From Trichosphaerium sp. ATCC 40318 (Eukaryota > Protista > Tubulinea): a stretch of 64,000 bases of DNA. The DNA is taken from the NCBI GenBank assembly GCA_038496445.1, contig JALMLS010000092.1, positions 1 to 64,000 of the forward strand. Direction: 5' to 3'. Shown here piece after piece: positions 4,067-55,948 of the stretch (position 1 is its first letter; each line of letters opens with the position of its first letter). Below the pieces are notes generated by a model. It had not been told where the DNA came from. It ran no database searches and saw only the letters and a program-made list of their open reading frames with translations. A program made the translations under genes and the position numbers.

Positions 4067-5894
4067 TTAGACTGTAGCCCTAACATCAGCACGGTCGCCT
4101 CTCGTAGTCTCTGGCGTGAGCGCTCGCAAAAAGTGTTCTTTGGAGCAAGCGTTTTTCACAAATGGGTGCTAATAATAATAAATGTCAGATACTTGACAGC
4201 TTGTACTATGTATGGAAAGGCTATATATGACACGCACTGAAAGCAATTGATGGGCATCTGGTCTTCGCATTGGGTGCTTCATTAAGCAGTAGTTCTTAAA
4301 TTCCTTGAATTCGTAGCTCCAATACCCCTCGTTAGAGAGTGGAGGTATGCCGTGTATATTCATCAATGTCATAGCACGCATAGGTGCTGATTTAAAGTAC
4401 GGAGGTTCTCCTAAAGTACCAAAGTGTGAGGGACTTACTTTGAGGTTGTTGACAAAAAAAAACAGAAGCAACAAGCCAGCAAGGGTACCTTCTGCCATTT
4501 CGAAGCAAACAATACCGAGACTCCATATATCAACTTTGACGCCATAACCAGCAGGACTCCCCAAAATTTCTGGAGCCATCCAATACGGCGTGCCAACAAC
4601 CGTTTGCCGCTTTTGTTTTTTCTTGGTAAGTTGTGCTGCGAATCCAAAGTCGGCTATTGCGAAAAACCTTGGTCAGATTTTGATAGGCGAAGTCTTTGAG
4701 ATAGATTGTTTAAAACGTACTTATTTTGACGTTGCCGTAAGCGTCAATGAGTATATTATCGCTTTTAACGTCCCTGTGTATCCTTCCCTTTGAATGTAGA
4801 AATTCCAGAGCCTTCAGTATCGACAAACAAACGTGTGCAATAGCGCGTTCTACACAACGGGAATTAGGGCAATGCTACATGCTAGCACTTTATGTTGCGC
4901 ACCATCAAATACAATGCCGTCTGCCAAAAACTCAAACAAAGCGCCTTTTTCCATCCACTCCATCACGACCTACCATCTGCTGTTAGTACAGTGTTTGCTT
5001 CACTTATTTTAGTTCTCCAGTTGTCCATAGTGCCGTACCCATAGTTCGTCGGTGACAATGAAGCTGTCGAGGTAGGTGACAACGTTGTTGTGTCGCTTTG
5101 ACTTTTTCATAACCTGGATCTCGTTTTTCATCATTTGTGGCGTTATAACATTTTCCTTTAGCTTCATGCGCTTTATGCATACCATCTTTTTGGCCTTTTT
5201 GTGAAGAGCTGAAAATATGGTGCCAGACGTACTAAAATAATCATAATGAGCTTTCTCAGGTTGCAATGCGTGTGAGGCGTTTTATTACATTGTTGACGAA
5301 AATGGTTGTTCGGAAATGGATTGTTGTTCGTTTTTTGAAATGAAAAAACCCAAAAAAAACTAAAATAAATAAAATGTCGTACCCATGCTCTATTTGTCTT
5401 AATTGCGTGTATTCATCGGCATGACGGTGAGCATTGTCAGATACAACATCGAACAAAGATTTTTGTGATTGCTTTTTAGGTAGTTTCATCGCGCAGGCTC
5501 TTGTTTGTAGAATAGGTTTCTGTCTTATTGATTGGCGGTGCGTACTCGCAATTCTATCCTACACCAAATTCGTTTAGCTAAACCGATACGAACAATCGCG
5601 TAATGAATAGCTTTTTTGCGTACCCGTCGTGTGGTTTTGGTGAGTTTTTTTTCTGTGCCTCTGTTGTTCGTTGGGCGGTTTAGATCGCTCATTGAACCAG
5701 TCACACGTAGGCGCGATCCAGAGGAGGGGTGCGTAACTTGTTTGTGGTGGGTAACGTGCATTTTTGGTTGGTATCTTTCCGGATACAGGTGTGGGGTGAT
5801 AGTGTTTACTCGTTGTAACGCGAGGTTGGTTTATCAAGGAAGAGCGGACAGTTAAGTGAGTTTTAATTTGTGGTGTAGCAATTTGAGTTTTCAT
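4067..5894 (-). CDS. STE20/PAK-family Ser/Thr kinase (start uncertain)
   Basis: [72 protein letters not shown]. Confidence 0.93.
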
Positions 5895-8900: not shown

Positions 8901-9593
8901 AGAATAGAGGAGGCTAGTGCACGGCCGTTATTCTTGTACGTTGTTATTGCATTGATCGGTACTGGTTTTGATAGTTTTCTGAAACTTGTTTTGTTTTTCA
9001 GGTATTACATTGTACGCTTCCTCCACATATGTGCACAACATCAAGAAACTGCACAGTGCTTTGCTGACTTGAACGGTATTTCTTACCTGGTACCAGTAAT
9101 CAAACGATATTATAGACAAGAAATTGTCAATACAGTATGTGTGCCATGTCTTGGCACAATCAAAGAAATACTCACCAGTGATTCCTGCTTATATCCGCCC
9201 AAAACACACATTACTGTTGTGTTGGAGCCTTTAAAGGGTTTACATGATTGGATACAAGAGGATATAAACAGTAGATGTCCTAATCAGGTACCGTTGGTGT
9301 CTTCCAATATACTTTTGTCTGACTGCGTGTACAATAGGAAATATGGGACTTATTGGACAGTGTAGTCACCCTGTGCTATGACAATACTAAAGCCACTACA
9401 GAGGTATGTAAAAACGGTATGGTTCGTTAGTGCTAATTTTAATTAAAAGACTGCAGACTTGCTTGCCAAACTGCAAACAACGTCACCTGTTGTTGCGCCC
9501 AAAACAAATAAACAGAACAAGCAAACATTTACAGACATCAACAACATTGTAAATGATTTGTTGAATGATGCAGAGGGAGTAACAGACATATAA
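5949..9593 (+). CDS. Afi1/MesA-type DENN-like domain protein with C-terminal ARM/HEAT repeats
   Basis: Spliced AEFDINEGNTISSSYP...IADLCLPDRGH, LYGIALFRNKSDATVKRGAIQKSL, RILFVGAPAA, RPYVALT (Afi1/SPA pattern). ARM-like repeats follow (VVPQVSKLLDDHMPNVRQAAAQTL). Confidence 0.8.
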
Positions 9594-9766
9594 CATTGTA
9601 AATCATATAAATACGTTGTATATTGTAGTTTATTGGTACCCCAATATTCAAAATGTTACATATATCAATTGGGCGAGTGGTGTAATTGGTATCACACGCC
9701 CTTAGCATGGGCGAGGTACCGGGATCGAAGCCCGGCTTGTCCAACCATCTTTTTACATTTTTTTTA
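9498..9766 (+). repeat. Left arm of a ~270-bp inverted duplication (last ~31 codons of the DENN-ARM gene, 3' flank, tRNA-Ala, T-tract)
   Basis: Reverse complement of 14881-15150, with only about 2 substitutions plus T-run length differences. Confidence 0.97.
9671..9743 (+). tRNA. tRNA-Ala(AGC)
   Basis: Cloverleaf with GGGCGAG/CTTGTCC acceptor stem including G3:U70, anticodon arm CGCCC-TTAGCAT-GGGCG and ATCGAAG T-loop. A T-run terminator follows. Confidence 0.97.
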
Positions 9767-10418
9767 CTTTAGTGGTGTTTTGCAATCCTTTTTAATACTG
9801 TACATTTTTGCTTTAATACAGTTTATCAGACTTTTATGGTATTTTGAGTGGCAAAAACAAAGCTTTGTTCAAATCCTTAGTTAGTTTCAATTCAGTGTCA
9901 GATAAAATATTGTCCATTTCAGTCAAGTTGGTCAAAATTTAACTGGTTGTGCATGAAAGTTAATTATCTGGCAAAAATTTCTATGCTAACCAGTGCTTGT
10001 AATTAATTGACAAAAATATTCAAATTTCAAGATGATGCAGAAGCCAAGAGAACACTTTCAAGAAAAAAAACCCTCCACATATACAAAATAAGAAATTTAT
10101 TTTAACTCTTTTAAACAGTGGTGGAATCAAACAAAATACCTGTGCCTAAATGGTGCCATTTGCATGGAAAATAAATGTGCCCAAAATGTGTAATTTGTGT
10201 CCAATTCCACCACTGAAAGACAAAATCTGCACCTTCAACAATGCCAACTGCTCATGTAATGCTTGTGCTTGGTATTCACGTTGTTTTATTAATTCAGCGT
10301 GAACATGGTGTTTTTGCCAGCGAAAGAACCCACAAGTGTGCCACATGAACAATTGTAGTACCACTTTCCTGGGTTTTTTCCACTGTTACTAAGCTTTGCA
10401 ACAGTACTGGAATCGGGA

Positions 10419-10610
10419 TTTTGACCCGTACTAAACCCGTACAGAACCCGTACTTTTGACCCGTACTTAACCCGTACGGGTTCCGTACTTTTGACCCGTA
10501 CTAAACCCGTACGGAACCCGTACTTTTGACCCGTACTTAACCCGTACGGGTTCTGTATTGTTGACCTGTACTCTACCCGTACGGGTTACGTACGGGATCC
10601 GTACGGGTAG
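10419..10610 (+). repeat. Tandem 35-bp array (TTTTGACCCGTAC-TAAACCCGTAC-GGAACCCGTAC), left subterminal
   Basis: ACCCGTAC periodicity is directly visible, with internal CCGTACGG palindromes. Confidence 0.95.
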
Positions 10611-11273
10611 AGTACAATTAAATAATATGAAAAATTGGATACAGAATATACTCCTCTTTTTCCATACAATGTATGTGTACACATATATCACATGTGTGCC
10701 AAAACCACAACCATCAGTATACACTTGCAATCAAAAAAAAAATTTGGCCATCAAATTTTGTTTGGATTTGGCGATCAAAAAATCCAAAAAAAAATTACTG
10801 CAATTAAATGGCAGCTTGTAATCGTAAGGTACAAAAACATGTATTATTAATAGATGAGGGTGTTTTAAGGTTATTAGGGCATTTACTTAAAAAGTAGAGG
10901 AGAAAACTTAATAAAGTGCAAAATGTAGCTTTTTGCTGAATTTTGTTGTTTTATTGAATAACTTTGGTCTGACTGTACAAACTGCTCAGAAAATGTAGCA
11001 TTAGGTATATTTAGGTACAATGCATGGTTTCATGATGGTTTGGGGATCAACTCACCATTTTTAGGCAAAAACGACAGAAAATATGTATTTGGAGTAGTTT
11101 AAGGATATTATGGCCTAATAGCTCTATTAAACCACTTTTTAAAGGCGATTATGGGTTTCAAGCATTTTTCTGAAGTAGTCGTTAAGTTGTGGATATTAAG
11201 TTGGGTTTTAGGACAATTAAGGCATGATGTCTAAAATATCTCCTCAAACAGGTCAAAAACATGGTCGTTTAGT

Positions 11274-11338
11274 GGTAATGGGGTTGTAATGTAATGTAAT
11301 GTATTGTAATGTGTTGTAATGTAAATGTACTTGTAATA
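11274..11338 (+). repeat. (GTAAT)n degenerate microsatellite inside the element
   Basis: gtaatgtaatgtaatgtattgtaatg. Also present in the other two copies. Confidence 0.85.
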
Positions 11339-11408
11339 GTTAAGAAAACAATAAACCAATCCATCGTTTTTACTATTTTGTGTACACAATTATAACTGCT
11401 GACACATA

Positions 11409-11655
11409 TTTTGACCCGTACCTAACCCGTACGGGTTCCGTACTTTTGACCCGTACAAAACCCGTACGGAACCTGTACTTTTGACCCGTACTCAACCCGT
11501 ACGGAACCCGTACTTTTGACCCGTACTCAACCCGTACGGGTTCCGTACTTTTGACCCGGATTAAACCCGTACGTAACCCGTACTTTCGACCCGTACAAAA
11601 CCCGTACGGAATCCGTACTTTTTGACCCGTACTCTACCCATACATTATCCGTACT
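11409..11655 (+). repeat. Tandem 35-bp array, right subterminal (about 6-7 units)
   Basis: Same unit and same orientation as the left array. Confidence 0.95.
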
Positions 11656-12041
11656 CCCGATTTTACTACTGAACAAGTGTTAGCCCATAATAACATGTTC
11701 ACTTTTTGGTGCTTTAATGAATATAGCCACTAATAAAGGTAAGTTTAAAGTAGCATATTCAATGCACCTAATTCGTTTGTAGGGTACAGCAATGGCGTAG
11801 TATTGACCAAAAATAGTGTGTTAGCATCTGCAGGATATAGTGATGGCTTTGTGGTGTGCACATTAACTGGTGATGAGATTTGTGGCATTTTGGTGAGTTT
11901 GGGTTTTTATACAACCTTTTTAGCATGTATCAATAATTTACTGATGTATTTTGCAGGTTGTGGTAAAAGTGGTGTTGATTTTCTTTTGTGTGTCTTAAAG
12001 TCACTTGCCTTTGCTGGACAATAGTTTGATAGCATAAAAGA

Positions 12042-13094
12042 CAGTAGTAAAATCGAAAGTACGTGTGAAGTACGTATATTGTACGTGTGAAAAGTACGTG
12101 CCACGTACGTATATTGTACGTGTCAAAAGTTGGAATTTTGCCTCGTTTTGAACAAAAAATACTAAAAACGATGGATTGGTTTATTGGTAATTACAACTAC
12201 ATATACATTACAATACATTACAATACACTACATACAATACATTACAATACATTACAATACATTACCACTAAACGACCATGTTTCTGGAGATATTTCTATC
12301 ATCATGCCTTACCGACCTACAACTGCAACTTAACCACCACAACTTAATGACTATTTCAGAAAAATGCTTGAAACCCATAATCGCCTTTAAAAAGTGGTTT
12401 AATAGAGCTATTAAGCCATAATATCCTTAAACTACTCCAAATACATATTTTCTGTCGTTTTTGCCTAAAAATGGTGAATTGATCTCCAAACCACCATGGA
12501 ACCATGCATCGTACCTAAATATACCTAATGCTACATTTTCTGAGCAGTTCATACAGTCAGACCAAAGTTATTCAATAAAACAACAAAATTCAGCAAAAAG
12601 CTACATTTTGCACTTTATTAAGTTTTCTCCTCTACTTTTAAGTAATGCCCTAATAACCTTAAACACCCTCATCTATTAATAATACATGTTTTTGTACCTT
12701 ACGATTACAAGCTGCCATTTAATTGCAGTAATTTTTTTGGATTTTTTGATCGCCAAATCCAAACAAAATTTGATGGCCAAATTTTTTTTTGATTGCAAGT
12801 GTATACTGATGGTTGTGGTTTTGGCACACATGTGATATATGTGTACACATACATTGTATGGAAAAAAAGAGGAGTATGTTCTGTATCCAATTACAATTTT
12901 TCATATTATTTAATTGTACTCTACCTGTACGGATCCCGTACATAACCCGTACAGGTAGAGTACGGGTCAACAATACGAAACCTGTACGGGTTAAGTACAG
13001 GTCAAAAGTACAGGTCACATACGGGTTTTGTACAGGTCAAAAGTACAGGTTCCGTACAGGTTTAGTACGGGTCAAAATCCCGATTCCAATACTG
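12042..13094 (-). mobile_element. TIR element copy 2, inverted (tail-to-tail with copy 1)
   Basis: Ends CAGTAGTAAAATCG (12042) and CCCGATTCCAATACTG (13094). 12160-13094 aligns to the reverse complement of 10402-11373. Its right end carries GTACGTGT/GTACGTAT repeats instead of CCCGTAC repeats. Confidence 0.85.
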
Positions 13095-13379
13095 TTATAT
13101 CAACAAACAGTTAAAATTACTAACCCCACCTATATGTAGGTCAAGTAGGCAAAGACACAACTATTATTCAGATGATGAAAGCTCAGAAGAATGGGATGAA
13201 GATCTTTATTTTGAACTATGAAAATATAATATGTAATAAACAGCACAGTGGTTATTGTCGTCCACAGCACAATAAACCCACCTTTTTATAAAAAAAAAAA
13301 AGTGTGATTGCATGGAAAATAAACATGCCCAAAATGTGTGATTTGCATGTTGTCCAATTCCACCACTGCTATTGATAAG

Positions 13380-13760
13380 GTTTAAACAATAATTGATATT
13401 TTTGGTGGAAGAAAAAGTAAGCAATGCATCATCTGCAAACAAAATTTGTTTTAAAAGTAGAAATGTAGCTTTGGCTCTGATAACATCTTGTCATTGGTTT
13501 ATCCTACAATTAAAAGGTTTCAACATGATGGCAAAAAGAGTTGGGGAAAGAGGGTTGCCTCACTCAACTTTGAACATTTTGTTGGAAACAACTCCATTGA
13601 TACAAATAGCTACTTGTATTTGAAGCTGTTTCACAAGGGCAACAGCAACAGTCGTGGGTACTCCAATGTGGATGAGAAGCTTAACTAAAATATTGTGAGC
13701 ACAAAGGCTTTTGTTGCCAAGAGACTAAGAGACAATGGTGTGCTTTTACAATTTCCAAAG
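13380..13760 (-). pseudogene. Degraded non-LTR (L1/Tx1-like) reverse transcriptase fragment
   Basis: Minus strand reads SLLATKAF/frameshift/HNILVKLLIHIGVP...VAICINGVVSNKMFKVE*GNPLSPTLFAIMLKP...INQ*QDV...KQILFADDALL. These are the KAF(D), (RQ)GxPLSP and FADD motifs. Confidence 0.88.
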
Positions 13761-13782
13761 TGGCTATCTGATTGTCAACATA

Positions 13783-14377
13783 GGTATTTAGAGTAGATTA
13801 AGGATATTATGGCCTAATAGCTCTATTAAACCACTTTTTAAAGGTGATTATGGGTTTCAAGCATTTTTCTGAAATAGTCATTAAGTTGTGGATATTAAGT
13901 TGAAGTTTAGGACAATTAAGGCATGATGTCTAAAATATCCTCAAACAGGTCAAAAACATGGCCATTTAGTGGTAATGGGGTTGTAATGTAATGTAATGTA
14001 TTGTAATGTGTTGTAATGTACATGTACTTGTAATAGTTAAGAAAATAAACCAATCCATCATTTTTACTATGTTGTGTACACAATTATAACTGCTGACACA
14101 TATTTGACCTGTAGATTCTGTACTTTTGAGTACAAAAACCCATACAATCCATACTTTTAACCCATACTTTTGACCTGTATTCAACTTGTACAGGTTCCAT
14201 ACTTTTGACACAGATTAAATCCATACATGTGTACTTAACCTGTATGGATTCTGTACTTTTGACCTGTATTCAACGTACAGGTTCTGTACTTTTGACCAAT
14301 ACAAAACCTGTGTGGAATCTGTACTTTTTGACCTGTACTCTACCTGTACATTATCCATACTCCTGACTTTACTACTG
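13783..14377 (+). mobile_element. TIR element copy 3, 5'-truncated and heavily CpG-decayed
   Basis: Direct homologue of 11083-11671, ending ...TTTACTACTG. CCCGTAC units appear as CCTGTAC or CCCATAC. Confidence 0.88.
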
Positions 14378-14880
14378 ATGTGGCACATATATACTAATGC
14401 ATGCACATGTACTCACTTGTAAGGTTGCCAAAGGATCTTGAGAAGAATTGGTTGCAAACACAGCAGTTACAGTTCATACAAAAGGAAACAAGTTTATATT
14501 AGTTGATATGCAAACATGGAGAGTTGTTAATTGATATGCAACAGGTGGCATTGGTGGTTGAACAACCACTAATGTATTGGAATTAGAAACTTAAATCAAC
14601 AACCATTGGGAAATTACTGTACCACACTGTAATGTAGGAAATATAAAAAGACACAACTTGTGATTTGGTGATGTTCAGACAAATGGGAATGTAGATCTTT
14701 ATTTTGAACTATGAAAATACCTGGAATAAATAACCATTTTGGTTTATGCATATCGCACATTGAAAACATGCATAAAACATCACTTTGATATAAGAAAAGT
14801 AAATAACAATTTTTTACAATACATAAATGTGAACAATGATTACAACATTGTTGGTAGACTTAATCAAAACCATTAAAATA

Positions 14881-15150
14881 TAAAAAAAAAATGTAAAAGA
14901 TGGTTGGACAAGCCGGGCTTCGATCCCGGTACCTCGCCCATGCTAAGGGCGTGTGATACCAATTACACCACTCGCCCAATTGATATATGTAACATTTTGA
15001 ATATTGGGGTACCAATAAACTACAATATACAACGTATTTATATGATTTACAATGTTATATGTCTGTTACTCCCTCTGCGTCATTCAACAAATCATTTACA
15101 ATGTTGTTGATGTCTGTAAATGTTTGCTTGTTCTGTTTGTTTGTTTTGGG
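14881..15150 (-). repeat. Right arm of the inverted duplication
   Basis: Reverse complement of 9498-9766. Confidence 0.97.
14905..14977 (-). tRNA. tRNA-Ala(AGC), identical second copy
   Basis: Exact reverse complement of 9671-9743. Confidence 0.97.
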
Positions 15151-15286
15151 TGGTTTTTTACGTTTATTGTTTATTTTGCTGTTCACGTAAAGCCAAAGTC
15201 TCAATAAGTCATTTCGTTGCTGCAATATTACGTAGCAGCCGCCTCCTATGACCAACATAACACCAAACAAGTACTTGATTGCCTAA

Positions 15287-18200
15287 ATGACAGAAGAGTT
15301 GGTTAAAAAGCTTTCAACACGCGTATTCTTAGTTGTACGTGAGTTCCTATTAACTTTCCGTTAATTCAGTTGAAAGCAAGTACGTGAGGTGTATTGGATC
15401 AGATTCGAAGGCCCACCGCATCAGCTGTTTGAATTGTACAGAGAATATATAAAAGCAAAGCAGTTAGTCGCAATAATTGAAGATGACCCGTTGTTTCTGT
15501 TGCTCTTCACATTGGATAATGTCAAGTACGATTCGCAAGACATGCGGGGCGAAAATGGCCTTCTAGATGGCGTTACAGGTGTGTGGTAATAACACGAGCG
15601 CCCGCGCTCTGACTGACACTTTGAACAGAAGCAGCAACGGGTGTTTGGCACTTGAACAAGCCGACAGAGTACCAGAAACTTTTTGGAAGCGCGTTTGAAG
15701 AGGCGTTCGTCAATCTCGTTGACAGGTACCACAAAAAACTCTGAATAGCTTGCAAAACCTAAGTTAGCATTGTAGATATATGGAAGGGTCAGGAGTGGTT
15801 CGTGTTGGGCGACATTTTGTCATGGAAACGCAGGACAGGACAACTGCTCAAGCCCTTAGACTCAATGTTTTTCGACTCGGCACTTGCCTTGGGATTGCGT
15901 TTAGACCAATAGCTCTTCCAATACAAAGATTTCCATCATGTGCAGGCTCTCCAAGTTTCAAGTTGCCAGCACAAGGTAAGTTCTGACTCAACTACCAGCT
16001 TTGAGATATCTAGAAAAGGAAGCCGTATTGTTCATCTTATTTTGTAGGCATTCTCGGTCCCTTTGGCATTGTGGGAGATATGCAAGCTATCTGTCAGGGT
16101 TCTCCTACGACGCAAACCTCTTGGAACGAACTTTTACCAAACTATGGTGTACGACGACATCCAACCTAGTTATTTCTTTTTTGTTTCAGTCAAATTTATT
16201 TTCTAAGCCCAACCAAACAATATCTAACTGACATTGGGCCAATTGTAGAATCAAGCGAATGCAGCAAGCACATCATCATACCTCCCTTATCTACAGTTTT
16301 GTGTCAAAGGCATCTCGTTAAAGGTGCCATTGGATGCCGTGTGGGTCCCTGTGTTTGACATTAATACGAACAACACCGACACTTCTTTTTGTTGTAAACA
16401 CAAACCGAGTGCAACTGGCGACAGAAAAAAACTTCGAGCAGCACATAACTGGCATGACCTCATTGCAAAACAGCAATCCCCTGACGCAAATGGTACAGAC
16501 GACAAGAAGAACAGCAATCGATCATCACCTGGCTTGCAGACAAGCACAGAGAGGCTTAACCGCTCAAAGCGGCAAAGTCGCGCAGGCTCTCCAGGAGGGA
16601 CAGGCATTAGCATTACACCCACACCTCCTAGAAAGCGTAAACTCCACGTGAGTAGTGGTTCAAGCGCACAACCTAAAGCCAAACGGCCGCCCAAGAGCAT
16701 TGTTATCAAAACAGAAGCACCACCGCCGCCTGGGCCATTTAGTCACATTAAAAAGGTCACCTTGTTGTTGCCCAAGTACAACGCACCTCCAAAGAATGTA
16801 CCAATAGTGACGTCTATCAAACTACCAAGTGACTATCAGGTTGCAACTAGTCCAGTGTCAGCACCCCCTCTGGACGACCTTGGCGACATTGACTTGGATG
16901 GCTGGATGGAGTCCTTAAGCTCCAATCCCATACCTACAACGCCTACTGACTTTTGTGTCGTTTCACCTCTAGGTTTTGGTGCACCAACCACACCTATCCA
17001 TCTTGACGTGCGTGAAACAATTTTTTTAGTTTGTTTTGGTTTTTTTTTTGCCACACCACGCGATCCGTTCGTAGTCTTTCCTAATCGCCTTTCCTTTTAG
17101 GCCGGCACACCACTGCAACAAATTGTACATACACCAATCGCTATGAACACAGTTATGGAGCAACCGACGCCTGGGGTGGTTGTACCAGAAACATTTACAC
17201 CAGTCACGTCGCCGCTCCCAAGCCCATTTGTGCGCACAATTCTCCGTTTTTTAGTTTTGCTCCAGCTAAGGTTGATAACACTTGCATTAATAGAACCCAT
17301 ACGAAGGTTACCATCTGGTACCTAAAGATTACACTGCCATGACCCAAGCCGCATTACCTATCAGCGTTCAACAAATGGGATATGTCCCACGACCCGCACA
17401 AACTGACAGCAATGACAATGAAGCCAATAAATCACTAACTGCCACTGCCTTCAACAAAGAACCTGACAAAGGGCCATCGCTTAGTGGCACGTCCCCAGCG
17501 GGACCAATAACAACAAACACTCAAAAATTTATGGAGGACGACGATTACTCATCAGACGAGGAAGTATTAACCTTTGTACAAAAATCAAGCAAGGTTGCAT
17601 TTACGAAGCCGATCCCTTCTTGGGTAGATACTACCGGCACAGTGAATCCTGTTCTTTTGCCTTTGTTCCTGTCTTGGCGTACATGTGATGGTGACAATGA
17701 CACAACACGCCAAGGTCTCGTCAAGGCACAACACAGCACGTTGAAGCGCAGGCTCAAGGTCATTTCACAATCAGCCATGTCAAATTTACCATTACCCTAT
17801 CAGAACGCGATATCAGCGTACTTGTGCAAGATGCTGGCCGCTGGGACGTTTTGTAGTGACCCCAAGTTCACAGAACCATTCGATGCATTGCACCTCCATC
17901 GACGCAATCTGGTCCAGCACAACCATGGGCAAGCACTCGACCTCATCATGGCAAAGATGCTCAATGCACTTCCAGAGTGGATTGTAGGTCCAGAGAAACG
18001 GACCACAACACTTCAAGACATACTCAACATTAAACAAGGTAGAGTGACGTTTATCCTTCCTGGACGTATTTTGACTCAAACCTCTAGATTGCGACCCTGA
18101 ACCTCAACCTCGATCTGATTTACCTCGAGTGGTTAGTCTCAGGGAACCTTGTGTGATGATGGGATATCAATATGGCGATCAAATAGCGATGCAACACCGC

Positions 18201-22455: not shown

Positions 22456-23651
<1,196 letters not shown>

Positions 23652-24989: not shown

Positions 24990-27900
24990 ATGGCAGAACA
25001 AGCGCCAGTAACGGGATGGTCTATAGAGCAAGTGGGTGCATGGCTTGAGAGTAAAGGGTTGGGCGAATGTAAAGCGTGCTTTGCTGAAAAACAAATAGAC
25101 GGTGAAAAGCTTCTTACACTTGGTATACGCGACATACAACGATTAGGTACTTTTTGCCGTCCGTTTTACGCTGTTTTACCCTCTGAGCAGATATTCCAAA
25201 TCCTCGATTGTTCAGACGCATAGACTACAACGTAAAGAAGTTAAAGGAAGAACAAGCCACGAAAGTACAAAAAGCAGAGAGTAACTCACGAGAAGTACGA
25301 TTTAGAAAAAATATGTCACTTCTATAATCGACATTGTAGGTACTTGTTATGCAGCGTATGGCGCAAATAAACTCTCAAGTGGACGCTCCAGCAGCTAAGC
25401 CTGAGACGCCAACGTCAAAACAAACTGAGGAGAAGCCTGTCAAGGACGCGTCTACCAAACCAGTTGAAGACAGAGCAGGTACCCACTCGCTCAGGAAAAC
25501 ATCAAGTGAGACAATAATGATAACGGTTTCTCTTTTAGACACATGGGATACACCACAGGTGGTTGCATGGTTCAATAGTATAGGGATGAGCCAGTATGGC
25601 GACACCTGTAAACAGAAAAATATAAACGGCGCTGCGTTGCTGGCGCTGAGTGCCCGTGATATTGTCCGTACCTTCAACATACAGAACTTGAAAGACAGGT
25701 ACCACGTTTCATCGTGTACACGATACACGTTTTATTGAGGATGATTGATAGGCACAAGATATCCCATGAACTCGCAAAGGTAAAAACTAAGGTAACTGAA
25801 AAGAAGAACACATCTGCTGAGGACAATGTGGTGTACGTTGTTGGAGCTTTGAAATGTTTTGCAGTTCTCGCTTGTCAGGCTAATTATATCATTCGTTAAA
25901 GCGTCAATCCAAATGAACAAAGGCCACCTCAATACAAGTACATGAATGGTGTCTATGTACACTACACCACAGCAAACAGTGCTGTTATTTTTGAAGGTGA
26001 GAACACCAAAGATGTTCCAAAGGTTGTCGCATTTACACTGGAACGACCTGTAAATACGGTGCAATCGCACAAGACATACCCAATCCACATCTTTCTATTG
26101 CCAAAGTGCACCAAGAAAGTGTTTTTGCGTGTGGTGGCTCAAGATAAGACTAAACCAATGACCTTTTCTTTCACGTGCACACAGCGTGATGCAGTGATTG
26201 ACGACTATTTAACGGTATGATACAAGTGAGTACTTGATTTGTTCTAAGCTATGCACGCCAGACCAAAGATGAACAAATGTCAGAGGTGATCGCAGCCAAT
26301 AAGGCCTTGTACACAGTCGAAGATAATGTTGATGTGTCCGTCTTGAGAGAGCGATGCGCTTCAATGAAGGCTTCTTTTATAGATTTGGCTTTCCCTCCTG
26401 TGAAAAAGTCATTGTACATTGACCTCAATGACCTCCCTAAAGAAGCGAGTACGCCATTATAACGAAACTGAAATCAAAAACGACTACCATCTCACACGTG
26501 ATCGGTTAGAGCGTTTTCCTATTCAGTGGAAGAGACCTGTAGAGTTCGGTGGCTCTGATTTAAAGTACCACGAGAAGACTCCTTTATTTCCAATAACACC
26601 ACCTGTAGGGTATTTTCAGGTGGTATACAGCCTAGTGATATACAGCAAGGAAAGCTTGGTGATTGTTGGTATGATTAAAAGGAGAGTGCAAGCCGCGTCC
26701 AATAACAAGTTTACTCCAGGTTCCTTGGATCTCTTTCTATTATTGCCGCAAAGCCAGAGCTCGTCTTGAATCTGATGCTCACCAAGGAGTACAATGAACA
26801 AGGTATATATGAGGCACAGTTCTATAGAGGTGAATCTTGGACCAAGGTGGTCATTGACGACTACCTCCCTTGCACACCAATAACAGGGTTAGTACATATT
26901 TATTGCTATTTGAATGCATCCTTCCTCACACTTTTACTCAGCCACATGCCTTGGGATTTGGAAACACAACTTAGAGTAAATCCCTTTGGTCCACGTGGAG
27001 GTTTAGTATACACTCGGACGAACAACAATGCATTGTGGGTTTGTTTACTTGAAAAGGTACGCACCTAGCTGCCAACGCCCACTTGCTGTTTTTATTAAGT
27101 TTTGTGGTAGGCATACGCCAAGTTGAACAAGTCGTACCAAGCCCTAGAAGCTGGTACCCTTGCAGAATCGATGCGAGACTTAACAAGCTATCCGTGTTAC
27201 TACATGAACACGTTGTACTACGACAAGTGCGGTTCATCACCACGGAATCATTGTCTCAAACAATCTGTTGTAGAGAGGTCATTTGGGAGAGATTGTACGA
27301 AGCTCACAGCAATGGATTATTGATTGGATGCTCATCTCGTCACTTGACACTAGAAGAACGCTTTTCTGGATTCTCTTTGGACAAATTTGGAATAGTATCA
27401 GGTCATGCCTATGGTCTTCTAGGCGTAAAGAAAGTGACTCACGGTGGTAAGATTCTGAGGTTATTGCGTGTCAGAAATCCTTGGGGTAATTTTGAGTGGA
27501 AGGGCGACTATGGTAATGACTCCTCTCTGTGGACAGCTGAACTCAAGGCTTTGGTTGATTATAAAAGAGAATCAGGAACATTCTGGATAGAGTGGCGTGA
27601 TTTTACAGAACACTTTAGAGAGGTTACAGGTATGCATGCCTATTGTAGTAGGTTGGTAATAATTATTAACGACTTTACAAAAAGTGTGTTTGTATGGACA
27701 GATAAACGACTGGAAAAAGCAGTCATTTACTGGCGAGTATGACAACGACAATCAATATGGTCCACAATTCGAGTTCACTGTAAAAGAGCGCACACAATTG
27801 TGTGTGACGCTATCAAAGAAGGATCTCAGATTCTCGTGTGGTATGCACCCAAACTGATTCTGTTTGCAAATCAACCTAATGCATTTCATCAGGTGCTGAC

Positions 27901-47671: not shown

Positions 47672-50289
47672 CTCAGTTGGCACCATAATTAGTGATGGCA
47701 TTGTTTTCAACACAACTGTTTTTGACATCTGATTTATATTTATTTATTTATGCACTGCTGTACCTTTGCATTAGCATTGCGCTGTGATCGATAGTTCCTG
47801 AATGGTAACACTGCAACTCTTAATCGTTTGATTGAAAATACAAGTACTATAGCTACGATAGCAAGTACTACAACAGCAGCAACAATGCCAATGATGATAA
47901 ACAGCATACTCTTTGAGTCACACTTTGATTTGTTAACATTAAAAGTAGCTGCAAATGTCCCTGAAAAAAATCGTCAGAACAATACAAGTGGTATGTGTGA
48001 TTGTGTAGCACATACCCATATTTCGAGTTTGATTTGCAGTGACTTCTTCACATTCATTATTTTCTGTTTGAGCTGTAATACTTGAAAATGAGCCACTCAC
48101 ACAATCATTTGTGACATTGTATGTGAACAATGTACGACTATTTCCTGTGTTGACAGCATTATCGACCTTGATAATGGCATTTCCATCCAAGAGCACACAG
48201 CCTAAAATATGATATTAGAAGATATCTTGATGGTTTAGCATCAACGTACTTGTTGCGTGAACAACGGCATTGTCAAATACGATTGTGCTTGTAGGCAGCA
48301 TAGTTAGATTATAAAATTGTACTTGACCTTCAAACACCACTGTCTCTCCAACATCTATAACAAGAGTCTCTCCTGTCGGTTGCGTCCATACACCTGTAGC
48401 TGTATTGCATGTAAATCTAGGTGTAGGTGCATTACCAATACAAGTTTGTGTGCTTGTAGATGTTGGTTGCAATGGAAGTGTAGGTGCGAAAGTTGCAGTT
48501 TTGTTTGGACTTATTGGAAATGATGTAGGGCTTGTTGGAGATAATGGAGGTATGGACGTTGGCGCTGTAGTAGGTACATACGTTGGAGCTATGGTGGGTA
48601 TGATATCGGTTCCATTTCTCTATATAAGTTAGTACATAGGAGAGGAAGAAAAAGGTAAAGTACAAATTGATATGCTCCAACATCAATGGCACTAGCGTTT
48701 CTTATTCTACCACCTAATCATTTGTTATGAGTAATCAAAACTTGTCACTGATTGCATACGTAAATCATACCGAGGGACATCAGTATCAGCCCCTATAAAA
48801 CAAATCAGTACATAGTATTAAAACGATATTTACCTTGAAACAAAAAGACAGGTTGAGATGTATTTGTCAAGTCATAGTTGCCAAAAGTCATGTTGGCAAA
48901 AACATCGACATTATTTAGAAACAAGAATGAAGGTTGAATAGTAGACTTATTAATACTCTCATACTCAGAAGCATTCTTGACCAGTAGAATATTCTTCCAT
49001 GTGTCTATTGTTGATGTAGTGACCAAATCAACAATACCTAATCCAACAGTGACTGACTCTAATGTGGATTCACAGCCCTCTACTACTGTTACAAAGGTTA
49101 GCGCTTCTTTGATTAACAAAAAAGGAGTTGACGGGTGGTACTTGTTAGTGCGTTAGTCACTACACTGTTGTATACTTCCAGTCCATCATTGGAGTAACAT
49201 CTGAATTGCCGTCAGGTTCCCAAATAAGTAGCAAAGATTACCTGAAGACAGTTTCTTTAGTGGCGTTGGTAGCTTTGAAAAGAGACCTATCTTTAATCGA
49301 CTTGTTAGTAATCAAAGTATTTAAAAGCAAAAAACCAGTGTACCTATTGTTACATTCGCTTGTAGTAGACCAAAGACAACTAAAGAAAGCACTTTGTAAA
49401 TATTACCAATAGAAAAATGGTTCTAAGCTTACTTCGACCTTCACCATTTATGCTTAAAGATGTAGCAAAAACTGAGCTTTGTTGCACAAAGAATACTGAG
49501 TCCTAAGAGAAGAGTGAGGTGTACTACAAGTAACAACTGTACATACTGCATAAGACAATGCACCACCTTCATTGATTGATACTGTAGACGCAAAAACATA
49601 AATGCTTGTTCGATTGTGTGGAGGACTTACATCTGTCACTTTCATTTGGTTGAGGGATACTGTAGCTATTGTTTTCAACAATGTTAGTTGATTCAAATTG
49701 CGATTCAAAGGAAAGACGCACATGCAGTAATTCTGAAAGGTATCTCGCTTGAGCCGTTTGCTGCAAGCCGAAATGAGTCAAACACAATACCCGTGCACTC
49801 AGTTATTTCAATGGACTCATACATCCCTCCATTGACAGTAATATTGTCACAATTTAAAATTATGAGATCCAACGCGCTACCCTACAACTTGGTTTAGAAA
49901 AACAACAAAAAAGTGTTCTAACAAATAAGCACGTGACTCTTTTTCGCACTTTTTTCTAGTGCTGGGCTACGTACTTTTACGTTTAATATTATATCATCTA
50001 CTGTGTTTAAAGTGATGTTAATGCTGCTTGTGACATTTATACAGTCAACAGTAGCATTTTCCTAAAGTCGTAAAGTTACTATTTTTAATACTAAAAGAAT
50101 AGTAGCCTTTTTGGGCTTGGTTTTTGCTTTCGTTTGGCATACCAGTGCAACTGTTATGTTGCTAAACTCCACTGAAGGTACTTTTACACAAACTCCGACA
50201 GAATAGTTCACAAATATCGTCAAAGTAATCAATACGCATGGAAATACAGCGCTTAAGAGCGTCCAAGGTAGTTTAGGTTGTTTTGCCAT
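47672..50289 (-). CDS. Type-I membrane glycoprotein, paralogue 1 (3' end approximate)
   Basis: Hydrophobic leader, NxS/T-rich ectodomain, Pro/Thr stalk, TM segment MLFIIGIVAAVVVLAIVAIVLVF, then KRLR. Confidence 0.8.
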
Positions 50290-50627
50290 CAATTTATATC
50301 AAAACCGCTTAAACTGAGTTTTGTAGTTGCAATGTCACTATACGGAAGTTTTGAGTGCGTATTGTTCTGTTTTTGAGCGTTAATCTAAGTCCTAATCAGT
50401 CAGTTTCCGACTTTCAACATGGAACATTGTTGGGTCAAAGAGCAACTCTATGTATGCTTGTATCTTATACTATAAACTGTGCAGATGGCATTGTAGAGAT
50501 TCTAGTGCCTCAAAATTACTTTAATTTCACAGATTGCCTTTCGGCGCACCATCAGAGGATGGTTTTAGGTAAGTACTAGAATGCGTCTCTATCAACACAA
50601 CCATAATAAAGTTCAAACACATTTATC

Positions 50628-52904: not shown

Positions 52905-52952
52905 CTAAGGGTTTTGACATGCAGTTCAATGAAGGTGTTTTCTGATTTATAT

Positions 52953-55501
52953 TTATTGTTTTAGGCACTGCTGTACCCTTGCATTAGCATTGCGCTGTGA
53001 TCGATAGTTCCTGAAAGGTAACACTGCAACTCTTAATCGTTTGATTGAAAATACAAGTACTATAGCTACAATAGCAAGTACTACAACAGCAGCAACAATG
53101 CCAATGATGATAAACAGCATACTCTTTGAGTCACACTTTGATTTGTTAACATTAAAAGTAGCTGCAAATGTCCCTGAAAGAAAGAGTCAGAACAATAAAC
53201 ATTGATGAGTTTTAGCATACCCATGTTTTGAGTTTGATTTGCAGTTACTTCTTCACATTCATCATTTTCTGTTTGAGCTGTAATACTTGAAAACGAACCG
53301 CTCACACAATCATTTGTGACATTGTATGTGAACAATGTACGACTATTTCCTGTATTGACAGCATTATCAATCTTGATAATTGCATTCCCGTCCAAGAGTA
53401 CACAGTCTGAAATATGATATTAGAAGATATCTTGATGGTTGCATCAACGTACTTGTTGCGTGAACAATGGCATTGTCAAATACGATAGTGCTTGTAGGCA
53501 GCATGGTTAGATTATAAAATTGTACTTGACCTTCAAACACCACTGTCTCTCCAACATCTATAACAAGAGTCTCTCCTGTCGGTTGTGTCCATACACCTGT
53601 AGCTGTATTGCATGTAAATATAGGTGTAGGTGCACTACCAATACAAGCTTGTGCGCTTGTAGATGTTGGTTGCAATGGAAGTGTAGGTGCGAAAGTTGCA
53701 GTTTTGTTTGGACTTATTGGAAATGATGTAGGGCTTGTTGGAGATAATGGAGGTATGGATGTTGGGGTTGTGGTAGGTACATACGTTGGAGCTATGGTGG
53801 GAATGAAACCGGTTCCAGTTCTCTATATAAGTTAGTACATAGGAGGGGAAGAAAAATCTAAAGTACAAATTGATATGCTCCAACATCAATAACACTGCTG
53901 TTTCTTATTCTACCACCTAACCATTTCTTATGAGTAATCAAAACTTGTCACTGATTGCATACGTAAATCATACCGAGGGACATCAGTATCGGCTCCTATG
54001 AATAAATGAGCATATGTCTCGGTGTATCAATATTTACCTTGAAACAAAAAGACAGGTTGAGATGTATTTGTCAAGTCATAGTTGCCAAAAGTCATGTTGG
54101 CAAAAACATCGACATTATTTAGAAACAAGAATGAAGGTTGAATAGTAGACTTATTAATACTCTCATACTCAGAAGCATTCTTGACCAGTAGAATATTCTT
54201 CCATGTGTCTATTGTTGATGTAGTGACCAAATCACGAATACCTAATCCAACAGTGACTGACTCTAATGTGGATTCACAGCCCTCTACTACTATTGAAAGT
54301 GTTAGATTTTTGTATTTCAAAAAAAACTGTGTCAACAATGTACTTGTGAGAGTGTCAGTGAGTACACTGTTGTATACTTCCACACTTTCATTTGACGAAC
54401 ACCTAACTATATCAGTGACCCAATGGCAATAAAAATTACCTGAATATAGAGAACGTGGTGGTATTGGAGCCTCTACAAATAGCCTTATCTTGACTCAATA
54501 TGTAAGTAATCAATAATACTCAGAAAAAAAAACAAAGTGAGCGTACCCAGTGTTACGTTTGATTCTTCTAAAGTAAAGAGAGCTAAAAAGTACATAAATA
54601 TTCTATCAAAAACAATAAAAGTTTACATTTGCCATCACTTATGATATTATACGAAGTAAAATGAATGGAACTGGTTTTCACATAGAATGTCACCTCCTCA
54701 AAAGTAAAGTAAATTTTTACAGAACAATATACTAAAACAACGTACTGCATCAGACTGCGTCTCTCCCTCGGTGATTGAGACTGAAGAATCAGCAATATGC
54801 ATAGTTGTTCGATTATCTGGTATAGCGTTCACATCTATTAATTTCAGTCTCGAAAGTGATGCTGTCGCTATTTTTCTAATAGTTAGTTGATGTAATACTT
54901 AACCCTTTGAAATAACGCACATTTAAACACTCTGAAAGGCACGTGACTTGACCAGTTTGACGAAATCGTAAATGCACTAAACACAACATCCTGGCACCCG
55001 TTTAATTCAACATACTCGTACTTCCCTCCATTGACGGTAATGTTTTGACTGTTTCGAATATCTAGATTGGACAGAGTGGTCTAGAATGAGTTAAGAAAAA
55101 AGAAGACCAATAGGACATTTTTTTTCTCATTTTCTTTTTTGTGCATTGTTGTACTATCTGAAAAAAACCGTTTGGACTACTTCATACTTTTACGTTTAGG
55201 ACTATATCATTCACTGTGTTTAAAGTGATGTTAATGGTGCTTGTGACATTTATACAGTAAACAGTAGCATTTTCCTAAAGTCGTAAAGTTACTATTTTTA
55301 ATACTAAAAGAGAATAGCCTTTTTGGGCTTGGTTTTTGCTTTCGTTTGGCATACCAGTGCAACTGTTATGTTGCTAAACTCCACTGAAGGTACTTTTACA
55401 CAAACTCCGACAGAATAGTTCACAAATAGCGTCAAAGTAATCAATGCGCATGGAAATACAGCGCTTAATAGCGTCCAAGCTAGTTTAGGTTGTTTTGCCA
55501 T
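52953..55501 (-). CDS. Type-I membrane glycoprotein, paralogue 2 (3' end approximate)
   Basis: Direct duplicate of paralogue 1 (homology about 52941-55580 versus 47728-50378) with the same intron positions. Confidence 0.8.
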
Positions 55502-55948
55502 CAATTTATATCAAAAACCGCTTAAACTGAGTTTTGTAGTTGCAATGTCACTGTCGGTGTGTATTGTTCTGTTATTGAGCAGTTAATTCTCAGCGCGTTT
55601 TGTAAGTGACTTGATGTTGACCCAATGCAGTATTCTTTGAATTGGTCGATTGGCTATTACAAAAGTGTTGAGTGCCCGCCATAAGCTTGCGCAGGTGGAC
55701 ACTAAGATACCAGCACACGACATCATCCAGGATTAATGCAACTTCACTGTCTGGATTATACGCAGGAAAGTCTACATTCCGCTTGCCTGTGGTAGGTCGT
55801 CGACATGCCTTGTAGCCTGGCGTTAGCTCTTTACTCACGGCACCTTTTGGTTTGCGGAACACTCAATTTTGGCAGATTCCAGTTTTTGTTATCTGTTGAC
55901 CCACATGGACAATCACAATAACTGTTATAAACCGACCAACGCTTTGAT

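Follow-up and report, generated by a model that had tools for sequence, protein, structure and literature searches.

The question raised by this locus is why CpG dinucleotides have almost vanished from much of a transposon island of about 5.1 kb (9766-14882), flanked by two inward-facing tRNA-Ala genes. The window, i.e. the whole stretch of 64,000 nucleotides of Trichosphaerium sp. ATCC 40318 DNA that was analysed, had been described in a preliminary way as holding three element copies that lose CpGs with age, either by repeat-specific cytosine methylation (5mC) and deamination or by a directed mutagenesis resembling RIP. The features of the island and of its borders are listed below, with the number of CpGs and the CpG O/E where relevant.

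9498..9765, + strand: left boundary arm, consisting of an inverted repeat of 268 nt, with tRNA-Ala(AGC) at 9670-9747; CpG-normal, O/E 0.80.
9766..10401, no strand assigned: old repeat debris, 3 CpG, O/E 0.17; from about 10216 it is the left half of the repeat hosting copy 1.
10402..11671, + strand: copy 1, young and full-length, with CAGTA..TACTG ends and 2-bp target duplication AA/AA; 55 CpG, O/E 1.19.
11672..12039, no strand assigned: right-hand part of the host repeat, which copy 1 divides in two; 2 CpG, O/E 0.19.
12040..13100, - strand: copy 2, a hybrid between subfamilies A and B; 27 CpG, O/E 0.89, 37% of family CpG sites gone.
13100..13301, no strand assigned: member of a repeat family of about 200 bp, often found near CAGTA..TACTG elements in other islands and CpG-poor in every copy.
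13370..13776, - strand: fragment of a non-LTR-type reverse transcriptase (RT; ..NPLSPTLFAI..FADD..), with two TGA stops and a 12-nt deletion.
13777..14378, + strand: copy 3, 5'-truncated, family positions 677-1270; 1 CpG, O/E 0.06.
14379..14882, no strand assigned: mixed debris, 1 CpG, O/E 0.08.
14883..15150, - strand: right boundary arm, sharing 98.9% identity with the left one and containing tRNA-Ala(AGC) at 14901-14978; CpG-normal, O/E 0.88.
15151..15750, + strand: CpG-rich beginning of the adjacent gene region, used for contrast in the preliminary description; 30 CpG, O/E 1.11.

The extent of the depletion was evaluated by exact counts. Those made earlier by eye, 4 CpGs in 13141-14880 against roughly 30 in 600 bp at the start of the neighbouring gene, proved correct in both cases; the depleted stretch has an O/E of 0.084, vs 0.84 for the whole window, and a TpG/CpA O/E of 1.54, vs 1.21. 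The old parts of the island range between 0.06 and 0.19, and depletion starts and stops exactly where the tRNA arms begin, at 9766 and 14882. When 400-bp windows were scored, O/E fell below 0.2 in 9 of 27 within the island and in 185 of 668 in other transposon loci, but in none of the 388 of a control set that pools, genic and intergenic DNA together, the window outside the island and 20 kb of genic sequence taken from two further contigs. Ordinary DNA is not equally depleted, and the genes, described earlier as CpG-rich, are CpG-normal. The neighbouring gene had been named MED13; Pfam and solved-structure searches of the large ORFs returned no match, and a six-frame search with Pfam Med13_N and Med13_C was blank, as were its controls.

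The element represented by the three copies is a non-autonomous DNA transposon of about 1.27 kb, present in at least 40 copies in the genome, with CAGTA..TACTG ends and 35-bp subterminal repeats. Terminal inverted repeats of the 5'-CA..TG-3' type (CAGTACTGGAATCGG ... CCGATTTTACTACTG) are found in all full copies, and a 2-bp target-site duplication in 9 of the 10 full-length ones. Such termini and arrays of subterminal repeats are shared with the CMC(T) clade of cut-and-paste transposons, which comprises CACTA/EnSpm, Mirage and Chapaev, and the 2-bp duplication falls within the 2-5 bp range of the clade (PMC12730594); the element described here differs in being non-autonomous, without a linked transposase, and its assignment to CMC(T) is therefore provisional. 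The CpG-rich CCCGTAC subterminal units presumably are transposase binding sites.

These units are kept in copy 1, partly converted in copy 2 and erased in copy 3, as the preliminary description had it: 42, 7 and 0 intact CCGTAC units were counted, respectively, copy 3 showing 8 CTGTAC, 7 CCATAC and 3 CTGTAT in their place. Loss at family CpG sites is correspondingly graded, at 13%, 37% and 94%, with 29 of 31 sites gone in copy 3 (18 to TG, 9 to CA, 2 to other dinucleotides). The proposed age series is not a clean one, because copy 2, which has GTACGTG-type units in one arm, is a hybrid of two subfamilies. Its divergence from every relative, measured at non-CpG sites, is 6% or more, vs 5.5% for copy 3, so that CpG loss does not match non-CpG divergence.

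The mutation spectrum was determined over 44 family copies, aligned and tabulated by dinucleotide context as the preliminary description had suggested. C>T changes are concentrated at CpG, where they affect 17.1% of cytosines, vs 0.8% at CpA, 3.0% at CpC and 2.2% at CpT, transitions at A/T being 0.8% (Fisher odds ratio for CpG 10, p = 3e-177). Within the internal region, where alignment is unambiguous, the corresponding values are 20.6% vs 0.8, 2.3, 2.3 and 0.5%. The two strands are hit equally, with 254 TG and 232 CA outcomes; there is no trinucleotide preference (ACG 14%, CCG 19%, TCG 19%), and runs tests on five decayed copies revealed no strand clustering (p = 0.26-0.76). CpG-site loss per copy spans the range from 0% to 100% without gaps, and correlates only weakly with divergence at non-CpG sites (Spearman 0.33-0.40).

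Such a spectrum is probably the product of 5-methylcytosine deamination in a silent, CpG-methylated transposon island, a reading based on sequence comparison. The island between the tRNA-Ala genes would be, or would long have been, CpG-methylated, as its mutational footprint suggests, and spontaneous deamination would turn CG into TG or CA. Long-resident sequences (host repeat, RT fragment, copy 3 and unclassified debris) would in this way have lost nearly all of their CpGs, recent insertions (copy 1 and, in part, copy 2) still retaining their CpG-rich CCCGTAC units. Of the two processes originally envisaged, methylation and deamination fit all of the sequence tests, namely CpG transitions, TpG/CpA excess, equality of the strands, range of decay, CpG-normal genes and presence of DNMT1 and SRA genes.

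The set of methylation genes was searched for, again following the preliminary description. A DNMT1-type gene, located on contig C7, carries intact motifs DLFAGCGGLS, GGPPCQGFSGLNRF, ENV and QIGNAV; when its last exon is compared with solved structures, all of the top matches are DNMT1 (E = 7e-16), and an upstream ORF matches the BAH domain weakly (23.3 bits vs a Pfam cut-off of 30.8 bits), exons having been searched singly and not joined. A second complete C5 methylase is found on C59. Solved-structure and Pfam searches of its single exons assign it to no subfamily; its motif IV reads GGPPCQGFS, which we take to be of the DNMT1/bacterial type. Only these two PF00145 loci were found; no DNMT3-like gene turned up, and no enzyme of the RID/Dim-2 type, as in fungal RIP, was identified. 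SRA-domain genes occur at three loci or more. The enzyme acting on the island would likely be the DNMT1-type maintenance methylase, together with SRA-domain readers.

The other process, RIP-like mutagenesis, would require an enzyme, e.g. the C59 methylase, able to sense duplicated DNA and to deaminate CpG cytosines in bursts. Fungal RIP likewise consists of C>T hypermutation in repeated DNA; its classical target is CpA (CpA>TpA), and CpG- or TCG-biased variants are reported in basidiomycetes. Here CpA is the least mutated context, no trinucleotide is preferred, and the (CpA+TpG)/(ApC+GpT) index of the depleted stretch is 1.24. Near-identical and linked duplicates are spared: copy 1 and a copy on contig C461 share 99% identity and are both CpG-intact, despite the abundance of the family, and adjacent inverted pairs (copy 1/copy 2, and a pair on C95) retain 63-88% of their CpGs. 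A local 2.7-kb duplication (47728-50384 and 52941-55587) shows 28 CpG-type vs 353 other differences, about a 2-fold excess per site. Changes on the same strand do not form runs, unlike in fungal RIP. RIP-like mutagenesis is thus unsupported, and we regard it as very unlikely, in spite of the uneven decay of the copies and of a C59 methylase that has no subfamily assignment.

The unevenness is best illustrated by two copies with 14 non-CpG differences each. The first, on C2 (L012), has lost 46 of 58 CpGs (79%) at 1.3% non-CpG divergence, and the second, on C585 (L003), 5 of 62. Either the rate of decay varies strongly among copies, or the clock used, divergence from the family majority, is an unreliable one; counting private substitutions instead brings little gain, and copies standing alone in their subfamily, like copy 2, appear falsely old. 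L012 also shows an excess of TG over CA (32:12), as does a copy on C17 (L010, 19:5), with nominal p-values of 0.004 and 0.007; corrected for 13 tests, these rise to 0.05 and 0.09. The bias is nominal, is not accompanied by clustering, and was not counted as evidence for an enzyme. In decayed copies the CpG:non-CpG rate ratio is about 15-60, and rises further on private changes alone; in mammals it is roughly 10-15. An active, CpG-specific C-to-T conversion, driven by an enzyme (the C59 methylase is one candidate) in bursts on some silenced copies, would explain the over 40-fold difference in the odds of CpG loss at equal background divergence, the one-strand bias of the two copies and the ratio above the mammalian one. 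If true, it would be an analogue of RIP outside fungi, but we hold it to be very improbable.

It can also be imagined that methylation plays no part: master copies would keep CCCGTAC units for the transposase, and dead copies would drift under an AT-biased spectrum. Subterminal binding sites could plausibly be under selection, which would explain why CpGs are retained in diverged subfamilies (B copies, copy 2); a general AT bias is indicated by non-CpG C>T changes (2%) exceeding A/T transitions (0.8%). However, CpGs of the internal region, beyond the repeat arrays, are lost equally fast (20.6%, as reported above), and unrelated families of the island are equally depleted. The CpG excess of only about 2-fold seen in ordinary duplicated DNA of the window is insufficient for a loss of 94% at 5.5% background divergence, and drift of this kind appears very unlikely.

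CpG-specific loss recurs in a second family, that of the host repeat, whose uninterrupted paralogue on contig C374 provides the empty site of the copy-1 insertion. TG or CA is found in the island at 21 sites where C374 has CG (at 12 sites for the right half, 11672..12039), and the reverse at 2 sites, on a non-CpG difference of about 5%; the C374 paralogue has kept its CpGs, with an O/E of 0.85. Location, and not family, would thus set the fate of the sequence. Four or more repeat families, moreover, contribute fragments to the depleted old sequence of the island, which also includes 210 bp (14379-14589) with no CpG at all and no second copy detectable in the genome. The label repeat-specific, as originally proposed, is to be taken with a qualification, the erasure spanning the whole mixed island up to the flanking tRNA genes, and what is targeted may be the region and not the single element.

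In its full form, this idea takes the mark as regional heterochromatin: the domain between the two tRNA-Ala genes, barrier-bounded or resembling a centromere, would be methylated throughout, and whatever it contains would decay, repeat or not. It is a variant of the preferred reading, differing only in how targets are chosen, and we consider it possible but the less probable form; the coincidence of the depletion edges with the tRNA arms argues in its favour, together with the mixed families and the C374 paralogue. On the other hand, the apparently unique 210 bp could be an old repeat decayed beyond detection, the C374 copy could merely be younger, and all of the depleted stretches inspected are transposon-derived, so that region and repeat are inseparable in these data. 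The comparison of CpG O/E in 1-kb flanks with the CpG loss of each copy is confounded by neighbouring young transposons, and separates the two no better.

The RT fragment had been cited as a further trace of CpG loss. Both of its in-frame stops are indeed TGA, at 13560-13562 and 13491-13493 on the minus strand, and the one in VE*G does occupy an Arg position; yet three related copies have AGA there, not the expected CGA, and relatives carry TGT, TGC or AGC at the second stop. An origin from CGA was rejected, and neither stop supports CpG deamination.

Decay of CpGs in methylated transposons is well known in vertebrates and plants, e.g. in ageing Alu and L1 copies. CpG-specific transitions, TpG/CpA excess, equality of the two strands and stronger decay of older copies are common to those systems and to the island, which differs by a much sharper contrast to the rest of the genome, its genes being CpG-normal, and by an apparently higher rate ratio, at least about 15-60-fold. 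The footprint would then be the usual mark of DNA methylation on silent repeats, with no new mutation system or mechanism involved. As to hypermethylated repeats in Physarum, the literature search yielded no directly citable paper.

The closest comparison is with the amoebozoan Acanthamoeba castellanii, where CpG methylation is repressive and enriched in repeats, gene bodies being free of it (PMC12344493). Both amoebae have a DNMT1-type enzyme; in Trichosphaerium, too, the footprint lies on islands of repeat and intergenic DNA, genes and introns are spared, and nothing points to methylation of gene bodies. In A. castellanii, in contrast, the mark itself is described, rather than a mutational footprint alone, DNMT3 accompanies DNMT1, and DNA transposons as a class are not enriched (PMC12344493), whereas a DNA transposon family is strongly decayed here. 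CpG methylation in Trichosphaerium very probably affects transposon islands and not genes, matching the picture of repressive 5mC as ancestral drawn from Acanthamoeba. Silent islands of this genome can be mapped by their CpG O/E, the tRNA-bounded island is a convenient site to test tRNA genes as limits to the spread of methylation, and the CAGTA..TACTG family, with copies at every stage of decay, is useful for rate estimates.

The CpG loss in the transposon island between the two tRNA-Ala arms is real and striking. The 4 CpG counted by eye in 13141-14880 in the preliminary description proved exact (CpG observed/expected ratio, O/E, 0.084; TpG/CpA O/E 1.54), and its figure of about 30 in 600 bp is matched by the 30 CpG of 15151-15750, in the neighbouring gene region. 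The window, contig C198 of the searched genome (70.3 Mb, 642 contigs, genes rich in introns), has an overall GC content of 0.40 and a CpG O/E of 0.84.

CpG O/E within the island and in adjoining DNA
9766-10401, island piece: 0.17
11672-12039, island piece: 0.19
13101-13776, island piece: 0.10
13777-14378, element copy 3: 0.06
14379-14882, island piece: 0.08
tRNA-Ala arms, left and right: 0.80 and 0.88
15151-16150, adjoining 1 kb of gene DNA: 0.88

Depletion begins and ends exactly at the two bracketing arms, which may act as a barrier. The arms (9498-9765 and 14883-15150, 268 nt each) are inverted, 98.9% identical, and each contain an inward-facing tRNA-Ala(AGC) gene. The depleted pieces derive from at least four repeat families, namely an older host repeat, a ~200-bp family, a reverse transcriptase (RT) family and the CAGTA..TACTG element; for 14379-14589 (210 bp, depleted, 0 CpG) a second copy was not detected in the genome. 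Targeting may act on individual repeats or on a whole region with the tRNA genes as its bounds. A CpG O/E below 0.2 was found in 9 of the 27 400-bp windows of the island, in 185 of 668 from other transposon loci, and in none of 388 taken outside the island and from 20 kb of genic DNA (contigs C7 and C59). The equal depletion of ordinary DNA, foreseen as an objection, is not seen in these controls, which count genic and intergenic DNA together. Ordinary genes with normal CpG content surround the island:

22456-23192 (+), PCNA, N- and C-terminal domains
27083-27742 (+), calpain protease domain
4169-4579 (-), protein kinase domain

The sequence context of the changes was analyzed by projecting 44 element copies onto copy 1 and polarising differences by the majority state; results were tabulated for all positions and for the internal region, outside the subterminal arrays.

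Changes by context (all positions; internal region)
C>T at CpG: 17.1%; 20.6%
C>T at CpA: 0.8%; 0.8%
C>T at CpC: 3.0%; 2.3%
C>T at CpT: 2.2%; 2.3%
A/T transitions: 0.8%; 0.5%

Transitions are concentrated at CpG (17.1%, against 0.8-3.0% elsewhere; for C>T, CpG versus all other contexts, odds ratio 10, p = 3e-177), and therefore the objection that they might not be enriched there does not hold. The base 5' of the CpG matters little (ACG 14%, CCG 19%, TCG 19%), and TG and CA outcomes are balanced across the family (254:232). At 21 positions the host repeat reads TG or CA against CG in its paralogue on contig C374 (CpG O/E 0.85); the reverse holds at 2, with a non-CpG difference of about 5%.

Judging from these sequence patterns, the footprint would quite probably have an ordinary explanation, the deamination of 5mC in a silent transposon island. 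RIP-like directed mutagenesis had been proposed as an alternative; an active CpG-directed mutator of this kind appears very unlikely, since CpA is the least mutated context among C>T changes, near-identical element copies retain their CpGs, adjacent inverted copy pairs retain 63-88% of them, and changes are not clustered by strand, no same-strand runs being found in five decayed copies. Furthermore, in a local 2.7-kb duplication, used as a control for duplicated non-transposon DNA, CpG-type differences are 28 versus 353 others, about 2-fold per site. This direct duplication (47728-50384 / 52941-55587) is 82% identical and moderately CpG-poor (O/E ~0.5-0.6). Separately, two decayed copies display a one-strand bias in TG:CA outcomes, 32:12 in L012 (G000:C2:1148304-1149534) and 19:5 in L010 (G000:C17:113427-114646), with p-values of about 0.05 and 0.09, respectively, after correction for 13 tests; replication or transcription direction may be reflected.

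The three island copies had been described as an age series, with progressive loss of CCCGTAC units. The loss is evident: copy 1 has 42 intact CCGTAC units and copy 2 has 7, while none are left in copy 3, where 8 CTGTAC, 7 CCATAC and 3 CTGTAT are found instead. The series holds loosely: nesting fits the age order, but CpG loss tracks non-CpG divergence weakly (family-wide Spearman 0.33-0.40). Copy 1, which shares 99% identity with a C461 copy, lies within the decayed host repeat. Copy 2, a hybrid of two subfamilies, diverges from every relative by at least 6% at non-CpG positions, yet only 37% of its CpGs are gone; in copy 3 the loss is 94%, at a non-CpG divergence of 5.5%. L012 and L003 (on C585) have 14 non-CpG differences each, and have lost 46/58 and 5/62 CpGs. 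Divergence between master lineages probably accumulates under selection keeping the CpG-bearing, putative transposase-binding units, and would therefore date the silencing of a copy poorly.

Both in-frame stops of the RT fragment (13370-13776, minus strand) are indeed TGA, at 13560-13562 and 13491-13493. The first, in VE*G, does occupy an arginine position, but three related copies have AGA there, not the CGA supposed; at the second they have TGT, TGC or AGC. On these codons, a CGA>TGA origin would fit neither stop and was rejected.

A PF00145 search of the genome, with exons searched singly rather than joined into a spliced model, matched two loci. The C7 gene has intact catalytic motifs (DLFAGCGGLS, GGPPCQGFSGLNRF, ENV, QIGNAV); its last exon, in a solved-structure search, has best matches that are all DNMT1 (E = 7e-16), and an upstream ORF gives a weak BAH-domain match (23.3 bits, under the Pfam cut-off of 30.8). 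The other, on C59 (~70560-73085; L051 4560-7085, minus strand), is a second, multi-exon C5 cytosine methylase gene. Its catalytic domain is complete, every motif being intact (ELYCGAGG, GGPPCQGFS, ENV, QRR, GNA/VPPPLARAIG), and it has no recognisable N-terminal domain, save a weak SPOC-like match upstream; single-exon searches assigned it to no subfamily. Three or more loci carry SRA-domain genes.

In vertebrates and plants, methylated transposons are known to lose their CpGs by decay, and hypermethylated repeat DNA is known in Physarum; the island would be a further instance of such decay. Methylation at CpG in Acanthamoeba castellanii has a repressive role: it is concentrated on repeats and intergenic DNA, and gene bodies lack it (PMC12344493). 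There methylation itself is reported, whereas in the Trichosphaerium island what is seen is its probable mutational footprint.

The element is a non-autonomous, cut-and-paste DNA transposon of about 1.27 kb, of a protist and not viral, with ends CAGTACTGG...TTACTACTG and arrays of 35-bp, CCCGTAC-based subterminal repeats on both arms. A 2-bp target duplication surrounds 9/10 full-length copies (AA at copy 1, 10402-11671, inserted in the host repeat, whose paralogue on C374 is uninterrupted). Termini 5'-CA..TG-3' together with target duplications of 2-5 bp characterise the CACTA/Mirage/Chapaev/Transib clade (PMC12730594); the element shares both features, but its placement there is provisional, because no transposase is linked to the family. 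The genome contains at least 109 matches, about 38 of them copies with 85% or more identity to copy 1; a second subfamily is ~78% identical. In subfamily B (e.g. L035-L040; also copy 2 at 12040-12140) the CCCGTAC units of one arm are replaced by GTACGTG-type units, still CpG-rich. Copy 2 joins a B-type to an A-type arm, which suggests subfamily recombination or changed transposase-binding units. The internal region contains an imperfect TGTAATG-type microsatellite (11262-11330, 12200-12270). The ~200-bp family (13100-13301, 14589-14720, and many other contigs) lies ~0.3-2 kb from element copies on C17, C585, C66, C99, C12, C2, C606 and others; both may belong to one larger composite element, or share an island preference.
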